A stretch of DNA of 64,000 bases from Entomortierella parvispora E1425 (Eukaryota; Fungi; Mortierellomycota). The position numbers were made by a program, and so were the translations under genes. The stretch spans positions 806,001 through 870,000 of the forward strand of contig BQFW01000010.1 of the NCBI GenBank assembly GCA_020891255.1, written 5' to 3'. Under the pieces are notes generated by a model. That model was given only the letters and a program-made list of their open reading frames with translations. It had not been told where the DNA came from and ran no database searches. Shown here piece after piece: positions 48,990 to 56,184 of the stretch. Each line of letters opens with the position of its first letter. The first letter of the stretch is position 1.

Positions 48990-51390
48990 CTACAAAGAAA
49001 AGACTGCAGACACAGAACGAGCACCGTCAAAGACGAAGGTGTTATCCATAGGAATATACTGATGGGTGATCAACTTGATGATCTCCTGGCTCACAACGCC
49101 GCCCATGAACGAAGCAATGTTGTGGATGGCACCATTGCCATATCGGCAACTATGTAGTTCAAAAAAAAAAAAAAAAAAAAGAACCCATCAGCATCAACTT
49201 TCAGTTGTAGCCACATCAGAATGGTTCAGGATGTCGCAGTTGTCTAAACACTTACATCTCATAAGTCAAGTCCCTGGGCACGGCATCACGTTCAAGTCCC
49301 CAGGATTGCAGCAAGCCTGCAACCAACGAATGGAGTTTTGGAACATCCTCCTCTTCCCAAACGGTTCCGTCACTGGGGCCCTCACCTGGGTACCGACCCT
49401 CCTGCTCAAAGAACGCATCTGATGCTCGCAAGATCACATAGTATGGGAAGACCGACTCCGGGTCTGCAAGCCAGGACGCTATTTTTTTTTTTTTTTAACC
49501 AAAAAGTTGTTAATGATTATTGGTTAATAATTCACTTTATCCAACTGCAGGAACTGAGATCCGTTTCCTTACCAATCTGTTTTGTCTTGGGATGCTGGTA
49601 TTCATCCTCGAGGCTGCGATAACAAATCACCTTTAAAAAGGCCGAGAACTTGCAAAAGCTCTCGATTTCCTGACTAGTGATAGACTCGGCGGCTCGTCCC
49701 AGTCTCTCTAAGATCGAGTTCACATTCTTTGTCACATCCTCAACATCTTGCTTGGCCTTGCCTTTGTAACTATAAACGTGGAATAATACATACAAATGTC
49801 AGGGCAAGAGCAAAACATGAAAATAATCCAAAGGTGAAGAACCAGCTTCACAAATATTACATGCTCTGCAGCGTCACGTAGCTGTCAGTCTGTGCCTTCA
49901 TATCTGGAATAGTTCCAGACAATGGCAAGAAGCCAGAGCTCTTTCCGCTGTCCTCCACAAAGTCCCGAACAGCTCGCAGGATGATCCAGAAGGTTGAAGA
50001 CTACAAAAGTACATCAAACCCCAAAGATGAGAGTCGAACTGCGTTAATTTCAAAAATTTGCGAAGGAGACTGCCCATATACATGTCCCAGAGATACTACA
50101 GGTAATCTTACGTCTGTGGTCAAGTTCTCGCACTTTTCGTCTTTGAAAAGTTCCTTGATGGAGCTAGGTACAACTGTAGCCTGACAAGACCGAAGTACAG
50201 AGTTGATGGCCTCGTCAAAGTTCTCGTCGTCAGGAGACCGCATGCCTGCACGGATGTTGGCTTTGAGCTGGTTTTTTTCAGCGTATGTCGAGGGAATCTT
50301 GCCTCCATGCTGCATTGGTTATTTAAAGAGACCGTACATCAGTCCTCAATAATATAGATCCGCGGTCAACTCCTGTTCCTCTTCGGACACTTACTGTTTG
50401 CTTCCATTCCTCCATATACTTTAAAAGAATGGCCACATAAGGAATGTGGCCAAACTCCATAGTATCTTCCGTGTCGAAATTGAATGAGGTTGCATATGAG
50501 GCGAGCTCAAGGAAGGGGCTATCGATACGGAGGTCTGCGACGTTATCCGGGTGACTCTCCACAACTACTCAAAAGAGAATGGAGGGGTCAACGTAAGCAA
50601 GATTCAGTAGAAACATATAGGAACAACCACAGCAAAAGGGTTACGTACTAACGTGCTCGGGAATAGCAATCCTGACCTGTCCAACAAGACCCACAGTCTT
50701 GACCCAGACAAAGGTCGTGTCTTTTGAACAGAGGTATGCCAGTTTTCTGGCAGTCGCCTGGGACACATTGGAGACAATAACGACGCTGAACTTTGATAAA
50801 TAGTTTGGTTCCTCGGCCAGAATCGAGAGGATGTCCTTGGAGGCCCAGTGTCCCTGCACATCATCGTTCAGCTCTCCCAAGAGCTCGTAAGCTCTCTCTG
50901 CTCTCGACTTTCCCAGACTCTCGGCATCCAGGAAGAAGTTGGATCCAATGTCGTCCAGCGTCACCTGTCCTGCATCAACCACAGTAAATTGACCGATGCC
51001 TATCCAGAATAAATTGTGCTTGCTTTAAATGACAAATTCTGGTAACCCTTTCAGTCTGAACTCCTCACATCTCGAGAACACCTGGCGCTTGGGCGGTGCT
51101 ATTCATGTTTTTCTACTTTACCTGGAAGGACCATGTTCTTGAGAATTTCGCAGCCAACGGCCGAGGCGTTTACCAAAAGGATATGGGCAGACTCCAAGGC
51201 TGCTTGTCCATTGTTTCCCCACAGTCTGTGATATTATTTCAAGCAGTAGCGAGAGAGACGATGGTCAATATCTTAAGTTGTTCTCGTCCGCAGTCGACAT
51301 TGTCGCGTCAAGCATGATGTCGCGTGCGTAGGTCCATTGGAGCATGTTGTACCTTAGCTGTCGGTCATATTTCTGCGTCTTGGCATCCAT
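48990..51390 (-). CDS. ULA1: NEDD8-activating enzyme E1 regulatory subunit (NAE1/APPBP1/Ula1); multi-exon
   Basis: [96 protein letters not shown]. Confidence 0.95.
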
Positions 51391-51571: not shown

Positions 51572-51631
51572 TGCGCCCGCAGATAATGTGTGCAGAACCT
51601 CTGCCTCTGCACCCCAGAGTGCGTCAAGGGC
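51572..51631 (+). pseudogene. Fragment of 8-Cys peptide family gene (copy A)
   Basis: Translates CARR*CVQNLCLCTPECVKG, matching the family C-terminal half (C..N.C.C...CVKG). Internal TAA 51584-51586 and no 5' part. Confidence 0.55.
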
Positions 51632-51935
51632 AAATCCTCTCCGGTAGAATCCTCTGGAAATCGGTACGAAATTCTCGAACGGCCATCAACGAAACACCTC
51701 TGCCTCTATTCGAACTGCATAAATTTCCCGTGTAGCAGACGGATGAAAAAGACCAAGAGGAACGACTTTCTGTACCGTTGAGGTTCCCTGTTGCATTTTG
51801 GGAGACTATTCAGAGGCAATGTGCAATGATCTGTTCAGATTTCAGAACGACTACTTTTGCTGCTGTGAAATCTTAATGGAGTTGTATCTATTCACATTTA
51901 CTGTGAGGTATTCCATGTTACTTGGTGCATGTTGT

Positions 51936-52289
51936 TTAGGGAAGGATGCCCTTGACGCAGGACGCACTGCATGCACAAAAGTTCTCTTTGCAAGATGTTC
52001 CAAAGGCGCAACGAGGACAAACAGGTCCACCAGGGCAAACGGCGCAGGCAGGGGGAGTTATGGTCGCAGCTTAATGCTCTAAGATTGTTTGCTTTCAAAC
52101 AACAAACACTGGACAGAAAGGGGAGGTGATTCGTGCAAGGGTGTGCAATTGAGGTTACGAACAGTTGATTGTTCTCGCGTCTCGTGGCGCAACGCGCATC
52201 CCACAGTTTTGGGCCTGCGCATAATAGGCAGAGTGACAGGACTACGGATGGTCCAGACCACGGCTGATTCAAGCACGAAGTTATTTCAT
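51936..52289 (-). pseudogene. 8-Cys small secreted peptide paralog (copy B), probably disabled in exon 1
   Basis: 51936-52070 reads AATITPPACAVCPGGPVCPRCAFGTSCKENFCACSASCVKGILP*, with Cys spacing identical to copy C. The putative exon 1 begins ATG AAA TAA (52289-52281), and the nearest TAG acceptor gives an in-frame TAA. Confidence 0.72.
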
Positions 52290-52830
52290 CTTTTCGTATA
52301 CAAAGACAACAGAGACAACGGACCAGAATCACCCCATATCGCGTCAGTTTCGTGACCATCCACGAATGGTCAGAGACCTCGCATTTTTTTTTTTTTTTTT
52401 TTTTTTGTCTCTATCCAGGGGTGCACGGAAAAGTTTCGACGCAACGACAAACCATACCTTACCGTGTGAAATGTGGGAATCACCCTTGGGAAAATAAACA
52501 TTCTCTCCTGCTGTCCCGTTGATTTTGCAGTGTACGTCCAACAGACAAGAAAAAGCGATCAAGGCTCACAGTTTTCAGATGGGGCATGGACAAAAAATCC
52601 TGCAAGAATCTTTGGCGCACAATCTGACAAAGCCATTTGGTTTTGCTTGCATTTGGATCACAGAGGTGCGCCCTGTGCCAAAGAACTCGATCCAGACCTC
52701 GGAGCCTCTGATCCTTCGCGTGTCCTACAACCCCATCTCATTCGTGCAAAATTGTCGAGCTGGACCAGACTTAACTTCAGAATGGTTGGACCATGGGAAC
52801 TTTGTTACTTCAGAGAGGAAGCTATGGCAG

Positions 52831-52840
52831 GTATAAAAAG
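52831..52840 (+). promoter_or_regulatory. TATA box of the copy C peptide gene
   Basis: GTATAAAA about 90 nt upstream of ATG 52926. Confidence 0.6.
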
Positions 52841-52925
52841 AGTCGAGGTGGTATCCGTTGACTGCCCACCAACCGACCCCTCCTTTCACCTCACCCTCCC
52901 GATTACAATCATCCATCGCGAAAAC

Positions 52926-53205
52926 ATGAAGTCACTCGCCCTCATCGTCTTGGCCGCCATCTTCATCGGCTTGGCTGGTGCTGCTGCAGTTGCTACGCCA
53001 GGTTAGATTATCTCCAAAATAGTGGCTTTATTTATGAGGAACTCAAGATCAGAAGACTGACCTGACTCCCACATGTGTAGAGTCCGAGGCTTGCGCTGTT
53101 TGCACCCAACTCCTTGTTTGCCCCAAATGTCCCGCAGGCTACTACTGCCAAGAGAATGATTGCTCCTGCACTGCCCGCTGCGTCAAGGGAATCCCTCCAA
53201 AGTAA
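52926..53205 (+). CDS. Small secreted 8-Cys peptide (copy C, 66 aa), 2 exons
   Basis: Exon 1 52926-53001 (MKSLALIVLAAIFIGLAGAAAVATP, signal peptide), intron 53002-53080 (GT..CTGAC..TAG), exon 2 53081-53205 (ESEACAVCTQLLVCPKCPAGYYCQENDCSCTARCVKGIPPK*). Confidence 0.88.
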
Positions 53206-53986
53206 ACTGCCAAGTCTATTCTTCAACGCAGCAATTGAGGCCTAGGCGACAGCCTGCTCATGGCCACTGGCCCAAGAAAATACATGTTTCGAAAGGATTT
53301 TTTTCTCCATCCACTGCCGTTCTGAGTATGTTAAAAGAGAGTGCGACAGAGGGCCAAGCATGGATGCTTCGGTCGATCTTTAGTAGTCCAGTCATTATTC
53401 CTCTAACGCGTGACAAATGCTAAAGTCAACCGCCACAAGCCCTCCTGCATAGTCAATGCCTTGACCAAAAGAGCGCCCTCAAAAAATGTTGTCAGATGCA
53501 AATCTCCGTGATGACTTCACAACTTCACTGCTGTCTTTTCCTCTCGTATGATGATGACAACACACCGTGGGGGAGATTCAAACGTATGTCTATACTGGCG
53601 TTTCCGTTGTTGATATTGTCAGCTTGGGAAAATTGATGAGGCAAGCGCCAATCGATTGCGTGGGAACGGCTCTGCCCGATGTTCTGATGCAGCTGGGTGG
53701 TCTGCTTATTAAAAATGCCTCTCATAAACGGAACAGCTACAATGCAGGTGGCACAAACAGAGACGTTTTGTTTCGCTTTTCCTTGGACAGACCTAGTGAA
53801 CTCACGAGTTGTGTTTTCCATGAGTCGCACCCCATTATCGACCAAATATAAACTCGCACAAAACTCCCAGCGCTTGTACCGCTACCTGCAGGAGCGTCTG
53901 TTGGATATAAAATTTCATTCGACTTTCACGGTACTAGAATAATGGCTGCCATCTGACAACATGGCGGGAGGTTCTGGTTCGACAAG

Positions 53987-54251
53987 TTATTTGGCTATTG
54001 TAATATGTTTGGGTCGTTAGATCTAGGAAAGTGTGCAAGAGATGTACCGCTTTCACATGAAATTGTGTGAGCTTACTTTTTTTTGCGCAAATTCCCTGGT
54101 AATTACGTCCGGGGGGTTTGAAGCAGTACTCGTCCGCGTTGCATTTCACTGTAGCACTGCATGTCCTCACTTCAGGGCGTTTAAGTTGCCCAGCAGAAAC
54201 TGCTGCGTAACTCAGAAGAACACAGAGAATAACAGTGAGCTTGAGTTGCAT
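53987..54251 (-). CDS. Small secreted 4-Cys peptide (60 aa), 2 exons
   Basis: MQLKLTVILCVLLSYAAVSA signal + GQLKRPEVRTCSATVKCNADEYCFKPPGRNYQGICAKK. Intron 54076-53995 (GTAAGC..CTAAC..TAG) and an 8-nt last exon give TK*. TATAAAT about 130 nt upstream. Confidence 0.8.
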
Positions 54252-54982
54252 TGTCGAAGATAACGGGAAGGGATAATTTCTTGGAGCTGAAAAAGTGATC
54301 GTCAAAGGCGAAAGAAGTGGAACCGGTTATAAGGGCGAGGTGTAAGGACAGGAAGGCTGGACGTACAAGTGGCATTATTTATAAGGAGTAGAGGTATTAC
54401 TATCAAGTGAGCTTGGCAATGTCGATGTACGCATTGTGTTTAAGCGGCGACGCTCTGTTGAGGGGGTGAAATGTTCCACTCCTTGTTTTTTTTCTTGTCA
54501 TCAGTGTTGCCTTGAGTGATTTCTTCACTTGAACGAAACGTGTGTCAGAAGGGTAAATAAAAATAAAGATGGCAGGATAGAAACAAGCAAACAGGATAGG
54601 GAGGAAAGAAAGGAAAAAGATGTCCAGGTGCCAAGATTTACAGGGGAGTCAAAGAAGGGCCAGAAAAAAATCAAGGAGACAGTAGTGGATAAAAAAAGCC
54701 AAGGACGAAACAGGGCCCCGGGCTAACGTCCGTCGAATTATGGCTGATCACCTACAGGTCAGACTCCGTGCTAAAACGCGAAAACTACAATCTTTTTCAG
54801 ATAGTCAGCAGGACAAGATACTTGGGATCATAAGGAGTAGGAGCTTTTCTGCGAGGTTTTCTCAAGCTATAGAGATCATTTGTGGTTCTCTACTGCACGA
54901 GGTGCGGAGGATCTCGTGCTAGCCCTTTGTATCATCTAGATTGTACGCCCAAGACATTCTCCTCCTCACTTTTACACTCTCC

Positions 54983-55243
54983 ATGACCATCCTCTTCATG
55001 ATTTTGGCAAACACCTCCGTCCATGGCGTTTCTGTTCCAAGTAAGCTTCCTTGACAATTGCTAAGATCATGGTCACCGCAACGTTGAAAATCCTTCGACT
55101 GAACACCCTTAGATGCATTGACCAGGTGCCAAGTTTGTGATGAGCTTCCGTTTTGTTCTCCTCCTTGCAGATATGGCAATTACTGCAACATCATTGATTA
55201 CACATGCAGCACCGTGTGCATGACAGCAACATCCCTTGAATGA
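54983..55243 (+). CDS. Small secreted Cys-rich peptide (copy D, 62 aa, 7 Cys), 2 exons
   Basis: Exon 1 54983-55040 (MTILFMILANTSVHGVSVP), intron 55041-55112 (GTAAGC..TAG, phase 1 as in copy C), exon 2 (NALTRCQVCDELPFCSPPCRYGNYCNIIDYTCSTVCMTATSLE*). AATAAA follows the stop. Confidence 0.7.
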
Positions 55244-55369: not shown

Positions 55370-56184
55370 TTAAGCCTCGGCGTTGTAGAAAGCCTCCAAG
55401 TCCTCGACATCTTCCTTGGAACCCAAGAAGATGGGAGAGCGAGAGTGAATTGACTCGGGCTGAACGTCCAACATGCGCTTCTTGCCCGTTGTGGCACGTC
55501 CTCCGGCCTGCTCGACCAAGAAAGCCATGGGGAAGCACTCGTAGAGGATACGCAACTTTCCGTTCTTGGACTTTGAATCGGCGGGGTAGCAGAAGATACC
55601 TCCGTAAAGCATCGTCCGGTGAACATCGGCCACCATGGAACCAACATAACGGGCACTGTAGGGGGACTTTTTGGGATCCTCGGGAAACTTGAGGGAGTGG
55701 AAGTACTTTGTACAGGCGTTGTCCCAGTACTTGGAGTTGCCCTCATTCACAGCGTAGATCTTTCCGCGAGGAGGAATCTGAATCTATTGTCAAATTGGGT
55801 GGAGCTGCATTAGTTTTGTGGGGTTCTTTGGTTGTATCGCTCTTCCGTTTTCCTAGTCTGACAATATATTGACGTACATCAGGATGGGTGAGGATGAACT
55901 CGCCAATTTCGGTGTCGAGGGTGTATCCGTTGACGCCCTGGCCGGTGGTGAGGACCAAGGTCGAGCATGATCCGTATGTGCAGTATCCAGCAGCAACCAT
56001 TTCAGAACCGGGGCGGAGGACATCCGAGATCTGTCCGGTCGAACCCTCCTTCTACAAACACATTGAGTTGAGAGCAATAAGGAAATAGTTAGTTTTGATT
56101 TCTTTTTTTCGTTTCCGTTCCTTCTGTTTGCGCGAGGTGAAGGAATGACACAATTCCCCCATCCCCGGTCCTTTGTTCGTGTTG

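Follow-up and report, generated by a model that had tools for sequence, protein, structure and literature searches.

The peptide gene cluster beside NAE1

We analysed a 64,000-nucleotide (nt) window of the Entomortierella parvispora E1425 genome (bases 806001-870000 of contig 10 in the 38.9-Mb assembly), and describe here the ~4 kb between the start codon of NAE1 and the last exon of the fructose-1,6-bisphosphatase gene FBP1. This interval contains four related sequences (A, B, C and D) that belong to a family of small cysteine-rich peptide genes, as well as one unrelated four-cysteine open reading frame (ORF). When a profile of B, C and D was run over the whole genome, it matched only these three copies (E 1e-19 to 1e-22), and a profile of 15 family sequences again placed D, C and B at the top. 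Copy C encodes a product of 66 amino acids (aa) that matches 'hypothetical protein EMPS_07481 [Entomortierella parvispora]' at 100% identity. The first-pass annotation of this DNA had called the locus hidden and unannotated, which does not hold for copy C or for the ~30 relatives annotated as hypothetical proteins; the peptide strings it quoted were all exact and correctly placed in the window.

We interpret the interval as the E. parvispora version of a Mortierellaceae-specific tandem array of small secreted eight-cysteine peptide genes, with a probability of roughly 0.55 when an Opy2-type origin of the peptides, a target-binding role and turnover of the copies are taken jointly with it. Judged from the sequence, the array has contracted here and is mostly decayed, with one intact gene (C) next to the decayed copies B and D and the relic A.

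A peptide family of the Mortierellaceae

The B/C/D profile was also run with HMMER in an exhaustive search of 1.84 billion representative proteins. Besides copy C, it matched small proteins of Gryganskiella cystojenkinii, Linnemannia exigua and Podila horticola, and a 1910-aa metagenome protein with 21 weak stretches (P0003), which is uninformative. A further profile, built from nine full-length members, retrieved 30 proteins (59-110 aa). All of them are Mortierellaceae proteins named 'hypothetical', and members occur in six genera (Linnemannia, Podila, Mortierella, Gryganskiella, Haplosporangium and Entomortierella). This conservation across six genera rules out chance ORFs. In UniRef, the member from L. 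elongata AG-77 bears the name 'Opy2 N-terminal domain-containing protein'. A 399-aa protein of Podila clonocystis (P0006) combines a family peptide with a GTPase domain (PF01926) and is almost certainly a fused gene model. By these profile matches the family is known only from Mortierellaceae, and the earlier proposal of a real family of small, signal-peptide-bearing, eight-cysteine peptides was confirmed. In the literature on Opy2/PF09463 and on small secreted or cysteine-rich proteins of Mortierellaceae, we found no description of it.

Gene models in three other species showed a common plan, consisting of a signal exon, a phase-1 intron of ~70-112 nt and a single Cys exon, and NCBI gene spans agree with the modelled introns. 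The signal exon starts with M-(L/H)-A-(N/T)-K-x-F-x-P-L, and the Cys exon ends a few codons past the last cysteine, with a stop codon within 5-9 codons after the Cys domain in every copy. The 30 aligned members share a conserved M-L-A-N-K-T-F-R-P-L start, then a hydrophobic core, then a V-E-A-A-P end; we recognised signal peptides by visual inspection and by their conservation. The pre-peptide is ~66-80 aa long and its mature part, of ~40 residues, follows the consensus C-x2-C-x3-P-x-C-x(1-4)-C-x2-G-x-Y-C-x2-N-x-C-x-C-x3-C-x-K-G-x-I-P. One Podila horticola copy (L014:4646-4759, plus strand) has lost the intron, so that signal and Cys domain lie in one frame, and has a 4-residue loop before Cys5.

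One intact copy and three damaged ones

The features of the interval and its two flanking genes are collected in Table 1. On its sequence, copy C is an intact gene. Its exon 1 is divergent, with no resemblance to the signal-exon consensus of the family, and its intron has an unusual donor (GTTAGA). A contig search returned no contigs encoding the copy C product, and a search of the language-model atlas with copy C gave leads that were all below 0.85.

Table 1 Features of the NAE1-FBP1 interval (window positions).
Feature	Position	Strand	Evidence
NAE1/ULA1 (ThiF family, PF00899), first coding exon, ATG at 51390; left flank	51265-51390	-	Collinear tblastx matches to the ThiF gene of the Gryganskiella locus (L013)
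Relic A, C-terminal half of a family Cys exon, Cys4 to CVKG motif	51572-51631	+	
Copy B, intact Cys exon, eight Cys, phase-1 acceptor, TAA stop at 51936-51938	51936-52069	-	Profile match
Conserved non-coding element upstream of copy B, palindrome CGTGA-N4-TCACG then CTGACGCG	52330-52364	-	88.6% identity over 35 nt to L013:10431-10465 (+), E 2.7e-7
TATA box TATAAAAA, 87 nt upstream of the copy C ATG	52832-52839	+	Read directly from the sequence
Copy C, exon 1, signal peptide with long hydrophobic core, ends in phase 1	52926-53001	+	Spliced product identical to NCBI EMPS_07481
Copy C, intron, 79 nt, GT..AG, phase 1	53002-53080	+	
Copy C, exon 2, mature peptide of ~40 aa, eight Cys, GIPPK tail, then TAA	53081-53205	+	Profile match, alignment
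Orphan ORF, ATG at 54251, signal-like N-terminus, C-x5-C-x5-C-x10-C	54078-54251	-	
Copy D, exon 1, remnant of a family signal exon, ancestral ATG lost, 2-nt insertion relative to the Gryganskiella orthologue	54947-55040	+	
Copy D, intron, 72 nt, GTAAGC..TTAG, phase 1	55041-55112	+	
Copy D, exon 2, Cys exon with seven Cys (Tyr at Cys6), divergent C-terminal tail	55113-55243	+	Orthologue of L013:722-855
Fructose-1,6-bisphosphatase, last coding exon; right flank	55370-55750	-	PF18913 FBPase_C, E 4e-50

Copy B is probably a pseudogene that has lost exon 1: a signal-exon search found no family-type signal exon upstream of its Cys exon, nor elsewhere in the window. The Cys exon of B is most similar to the NAE1-adjacent copy of Gryganskiella, at 74.5% DNA identity across 106 nt. 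The 35-nt element upstream of B, which has a partial copy at L013:7408-7430, precedes family genes in two genera and is a candidate for a shared promoter element of the family. It is 261 nt from the acceptor of B, compared with ~575 nt upstream of an ATG in Gryganskiella, and this shortened distance is consistent with the loss of exon 1 in copy B. Immediately upstream of the element, at 52385-52410, is an uninterrupted run of 26 T (A26 when read on the minus strand), and similar A-runs are present in the Gryganskiella array.

Copy D is orthologous to a Gryganskiella gene (L013:722-1065) that retains Cys6. Compared with this orthologue, the K-T-F and M-T-I-L-F motifs of D fall in different frames because of the 2-nt insertion, and the sole possible start is an internal ATG at 54983, whose frame runs to 55040 and encodes a short hydrophobic stretch. 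An exact database look-up of the D product gave no record. The eight-cysteine scaffold that had been ascribed to all of these copies is thus found in B and C, whereas D has seven cysteines. Likewise, C and D do share the architecture of signal exon, phase-1 intron and Cys exon, as had been claimed, but their exon-1 sequences are not alike.

Relic A has an in-frame TAA (51584-51586), a loop that is one residue short, and neither the upstream half of the Cys exon nor a signal exon. Its best non-self hit in the window is a 13-nt exact match to B (blastn E 0.26), which is weak alone. With the family profile it scored 13.1 bits (E 6.5). We accepted it as a relic of the family because only eight matches in the whole genome score higher and because B is just 300 bp away.

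The orphan ORF carries a signal-like N-terminus and, from its sequence, is unrelated to the eight-cysteine family, as the first-pass annotation had it. A GTAAG donor follows codon 58 at 54077, and the 3' part of the gene model is provisional. There was no paralogue in the genome and no counterpart in the related loci, three candidate products had no exact database record, Pfam hits were sub-threshold and atlas leads were below 0.85. It may be a lineage-specific gene or nothing.

Copy turnover and selection

Local arrays were counted by six-frame scans of three loci. The Gryganskiella locus holds 8 family sequences within 12 kb, that of Podila horticola 3 in 8 kb (with additional annotated members on the same contig) and that of Linnemannia exigua 3. 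The Gryganskiella locus is collinear with the window, with an RSE1-like gene, NAE1 and, at the far end, a D-type copy. The strand layout is also kept in both species, the NAE1-adjacent copies lying on the NAE1 strand and the distal copies on the opposite one. The gene that flanks the far side in Gryganskiella has no homologue in the window, so the synteny is limited to the NAE1 side.

At this syntenic locus there are 8 family sequences in Gryganskiella against three and a relic in E. parvispora, with damaged copies in both, and the local gain and loss of copies suggested by the first-pass annotation was therefore upheld. The 8 Gryganskiella sequences include one with an in-frame stop, two with Tyr at Cys3 and one short fragment. 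Both sequences with Tyr for Cys3 (L013:5046-5165 and L013:3375-3506, both on the minus strand) are neighbours, and one of them also has the in-frame stop; the pair could be either decay in progress or a seven-cysteine subtype. Overall, these sequence comparisons support an array that turns over by duplication and decay, in E. parvispora mostly by decay.

A tree of 38 mature domains was poorly resolved and contained several older subfamilies, with one clade of C, B and four Gryganskiella copies supported at 97/94. The duplicates appear to be old, since only a 53-nt stretch of C and B is still alignable as DNA and synonymous divergence (dS) among copies ranges from 0.8 to saturation. The locus had also been described as fast-evolving, and a comparison of nonsynonymous with synonymous divergence (dN/dS) among the paralogues had been proposed. 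We ran it by the pairwise Nei-Gojobori method and obtained 0.12-0.37 overall and 0.30-0.57 for the loops only, values of low power with dS near saturation. On these sequence estimates, constraint on the loops is relaxed without any demonstration of positive selection, and 'fast-evolving' is not supported in that sense. The description of fixed cysteines with variable loops fared better: identity was 55% in the signal region and 34% at mature non-Cys positions, and such a signal, more conserved than the mature part, fits the pattern of secreted families that diversify their mature peptide.

This plan has well-known parallels. Conotoxins, amphibian antimicrobial peptides and legume nodule cysteine-rich (NCR) peptides combine a conserved signal with a variable, Cys-framed mature part in multi-copy arrays that turn over rapidly. 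The family shares with them the joining of a conserved signal to a variable Cys-framed mature peptide in arrays. It differs in having no sequence or fold relationship to any of them, and no sign of positive selection.

Relationship to the Opy2 cysteine-rich domain

Yeast Opy2's cysteine-rich (CR) domain is an extracellular module to which the HMH domains of Hkr1 and Msb2 bind (PMC13233613). Its framework is C-x2-C-x5/6-C-x2/3-C-x5-C-x6-C-x2-C-x4-C. The family resembles it in size (~35-40 residues), in the number of cysteines (eight) and in its predicted extracellular location, and also in the spacing of Cys1-5, the P in loop 2 and the G-x-aromatic-C motif. Both are predicted to have an irregular N-terminal part followed by a beta hairpin. 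In the AlphaFold2 model of the mature domain of copy C (predicted local distance difference test, pLDDT, 80.6), the hairpin is formed by residues 20-25 and 30-35 and there is no helix. Compared with whole Opy2, family members are free peptides with their own signal peptide that lack the Ser-rich stalk, the transmembrane helix and the Ste50-binding tail.

Profile evidence points in the same direction. PF09463 was the commonest Pfam match, found for 8/15 Cys exons (best E 0.0036), and among the 30 full-length members its best E was 0.14. Comparison by hhalign of the family with the genome's own Opy2 domains gave a probability of 91.8% with a 15-row alignment (A3) and 66.8% with a 29-row alignment, though profile comparisons of cysteine-rich sequences are prone to false positives. 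The 29-row score of 22.2 (P 5e-5) was reached by 0/100 column-permuted controls (maximum 16.9), even with the Cys columns fixed. Conversely, the next-best genome matches of the family profile after its own members were Opy2 domains on contig 8 (E 0.026). Judging from these sequence comparisons, we consider the family probably homologous to the Opy2-type CR domain, as a divergent relative.

A second, unlinked cluster is present on contig 8 (~638030-640720, minus strand; L012:6020-8720) and comprises two small genes that combine a signal peptide with true Opy2-type Cys domains. Their peptides scored 34.1 and 22.1 bits against PF09463, the latter exactly at the cut-off. Nothing else in the genome matched PF09463 besides the three Cys exons of these two genes, and we saw no membrane-anchored Opy2; one gene has two near-identical tandem Cys exons, each after a phase-1 intron. 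For the products we found no exact database record, a word search yielded no candidate and atlas leads were below 0.85. The AlphaFold2 model of a contig-8 domain (pLDDT 59) was too poor for structure search. Like the family, these peptides have the plan of signal exon, phase-1 intron and Cys exon, a similar signal start (MLS(T/A)(K/R)V) and a local cluster. They are unlike it in passing PF09463, in their Opy2-type C-terminal Cys spacing, in being unlinked to the NAE1 locus and in including a gene with two Cys exons.

Several results weigh against an Opy2-type origin or against the wider interpretation of the array. No family member reached the PF09463 gathering cut-off of 22.1 bits; for copy C the score was 11.6 bits with the full peptide and 14.1 bits with the exon by itself. 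The Opy2 resemblance noted in the first-pass annotation was sustained as a probable remote relationship by profile comparison, but not at the level of the Pfam threshold. The C-terminal part of the family, C-x4-C-x-C-x3-C, is unlike that of Opy2, where the last three cysteines are spaced C-x2-C-x4-C and not C-x-C-x3-C. The susceptibility of cysteine-rich profiles to false positives, noted above, counts here as well. In the ESM Atlas shape search an Ascomycota Opy2 cluster had the highest template modelling score (TM-score by query, 0.58), in line with an Opy2 relationship, but such a value has weak meaning for a 40-residue model. With the copy C model, Foldseek found nothing significant in the PDB (best E 2.1) and VIA-align gave no match at Z >=2, and a sequence search of the PDB also found nothing significant (best E 0.056). 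Finally, dN/dS below 1 gives no sign of an arms race, though dS is near saturation.

Possible function and alternative explanations

If the interpretation of the array given above is correct, the peptide would enter the endoplasmic reticulum and its signal would be cleaved near the V-E-A / A-P boundary. Four disulfides would then form, and a small hairpin-containing knot would fold and be secreted. By analogy with Opy2, the secreted peptide may bind an extracellular target, with membrane lysis less likely. We favour target binding over membrane disruption because the Opy2 CR domain binds HMH domains and because net charge varies between -4 and +4 across the family, which shows no cationic trend, in contrast to classical cationic antimicrobial peptides. 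The probable setting would be an interaction with other organisms or with the cell surface, and the peptides might act in defence, competition or signalling.

A possible, though doubtful, alternative, corresponding to the main reading of the first-pass annotation, is direct killing of bacteria, fungi or grazers by these peptides, as classical agents of host defence or competition, with the likeness to Opy2 reflecting only convergent Cys spacing. Such a role would suit secreted, cysteine-rich peptides encoded in tandem arrays that include pseudogenes, with a conserved signal peptide and variable mature loops, and no member passes the Opy2 threshold. There is also a precedent in Mortierella alpina, which has expanded malpisins, cysteine-stabilised (CS) alpha-beta defensin-like peptides, in tandem clusters (PMC4165938). 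Malpisins and fungal defensin-like peptides resemble the family in being small secreted cysteine-rich Mortierella peptides in tandem clusters with duplication and pseudogenes, and malpisins also in their mature size (33-48 aa) and mixed net charge. However, malpisins have six cysteines with CxxxC...CxC around a helix, whereas the family has eight, the reversed motif order and no predicted helix, and malpisins belong to a different family. CS-alpha-beta defensins were rejected on this motif order, on the absence of a helix from the copy C model and on a Defensin_2 match in only 1/30 members (E 0.026). The charge range given above, dN/dS below 1 and the reciprocal profile evidence for an Opy2-type origin also speak against this alternative.

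It is unlikely, but worth stating, that the peptides imitate the Opy2 CR domain in soluble form and bind mucin-type sensors (the HMH domains of Msb2/Hkr1-like proteins), either their own or those of neighbouring fungi, and so tune or jam mitogen-activated protein kinase (MAPK) signalling. Mortierellaceae would then have detached the CR module from the membrane and amplified it into a set of soluble ligands or decoys of HMH sensors, of the producer or of its rivals. Confinement of the genome's Pfam-level Opy2 domains to small secreted peptides, with no membrane-anchored form seen, would agree with this, while the remote homology and the different C-terminal Cys pattern would not. We regard as very unlikely that the locus consists here of dead remains, in which C is also silent or non-functional and its annotation the product of a gene predictor. 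Three of the four copies are visibly damaged, and exon 1 and the donor of C are unusual; yet the frame of C is open, with all eight cysteines and the conserved tail retained, a TATA box upstream and a signal peptide of strong hydrophobicity, and the published E1425 annotation was made by AUGUSTUS with RNA-seq hints (PMC8759367). Less likely still is a metal-binding role for the cysteines, in a zinc-ribbon or metallothionein-like module rather than a disulfide-bonded secreted peptide, and we give this hardly any weight. The CxxC pairs and weak Pfam hits to zf-CCCH_tandem, RING and MYND recall such modules, but all zinc-finger-type hits are far below threshold and the conserved N-terminal signal peptide routes the product to the oxidising secretory pathway; zinc fingers were rejected on these two grounds.

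Implications

Few soil and root-associated fungi are as common as the Mortierellaceae, many of which harbour endobacteria. In zygomycetes, over two-thirds of the orthologous groups of small secreted proteins lack a Pfam match (PMC9391592). For one such peptide family, the present analysis establishes how the genes are organised and the cysteines arranged, which taxa carry it and where synteny anchors it (at NAE1), and points to the Opy2 CR domain as its probable origin. What is new here, though not categorically so, is a probable Opy2-type Cys module that occurs as a free secreted peptide and has been amplified in an array confined to one lineage. Within E. parvispora the significance is modest, as one intact gene stands among relics. 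The occurrence of Pfam-level Opy2 domains in this genome only in secreted peptides, and not on a membrane anchor, leads to a testable idea about binding partners. If binding to HMH domains were true, these would be the first peptide ligands or decoys known for this fungal MAPK sensor system.

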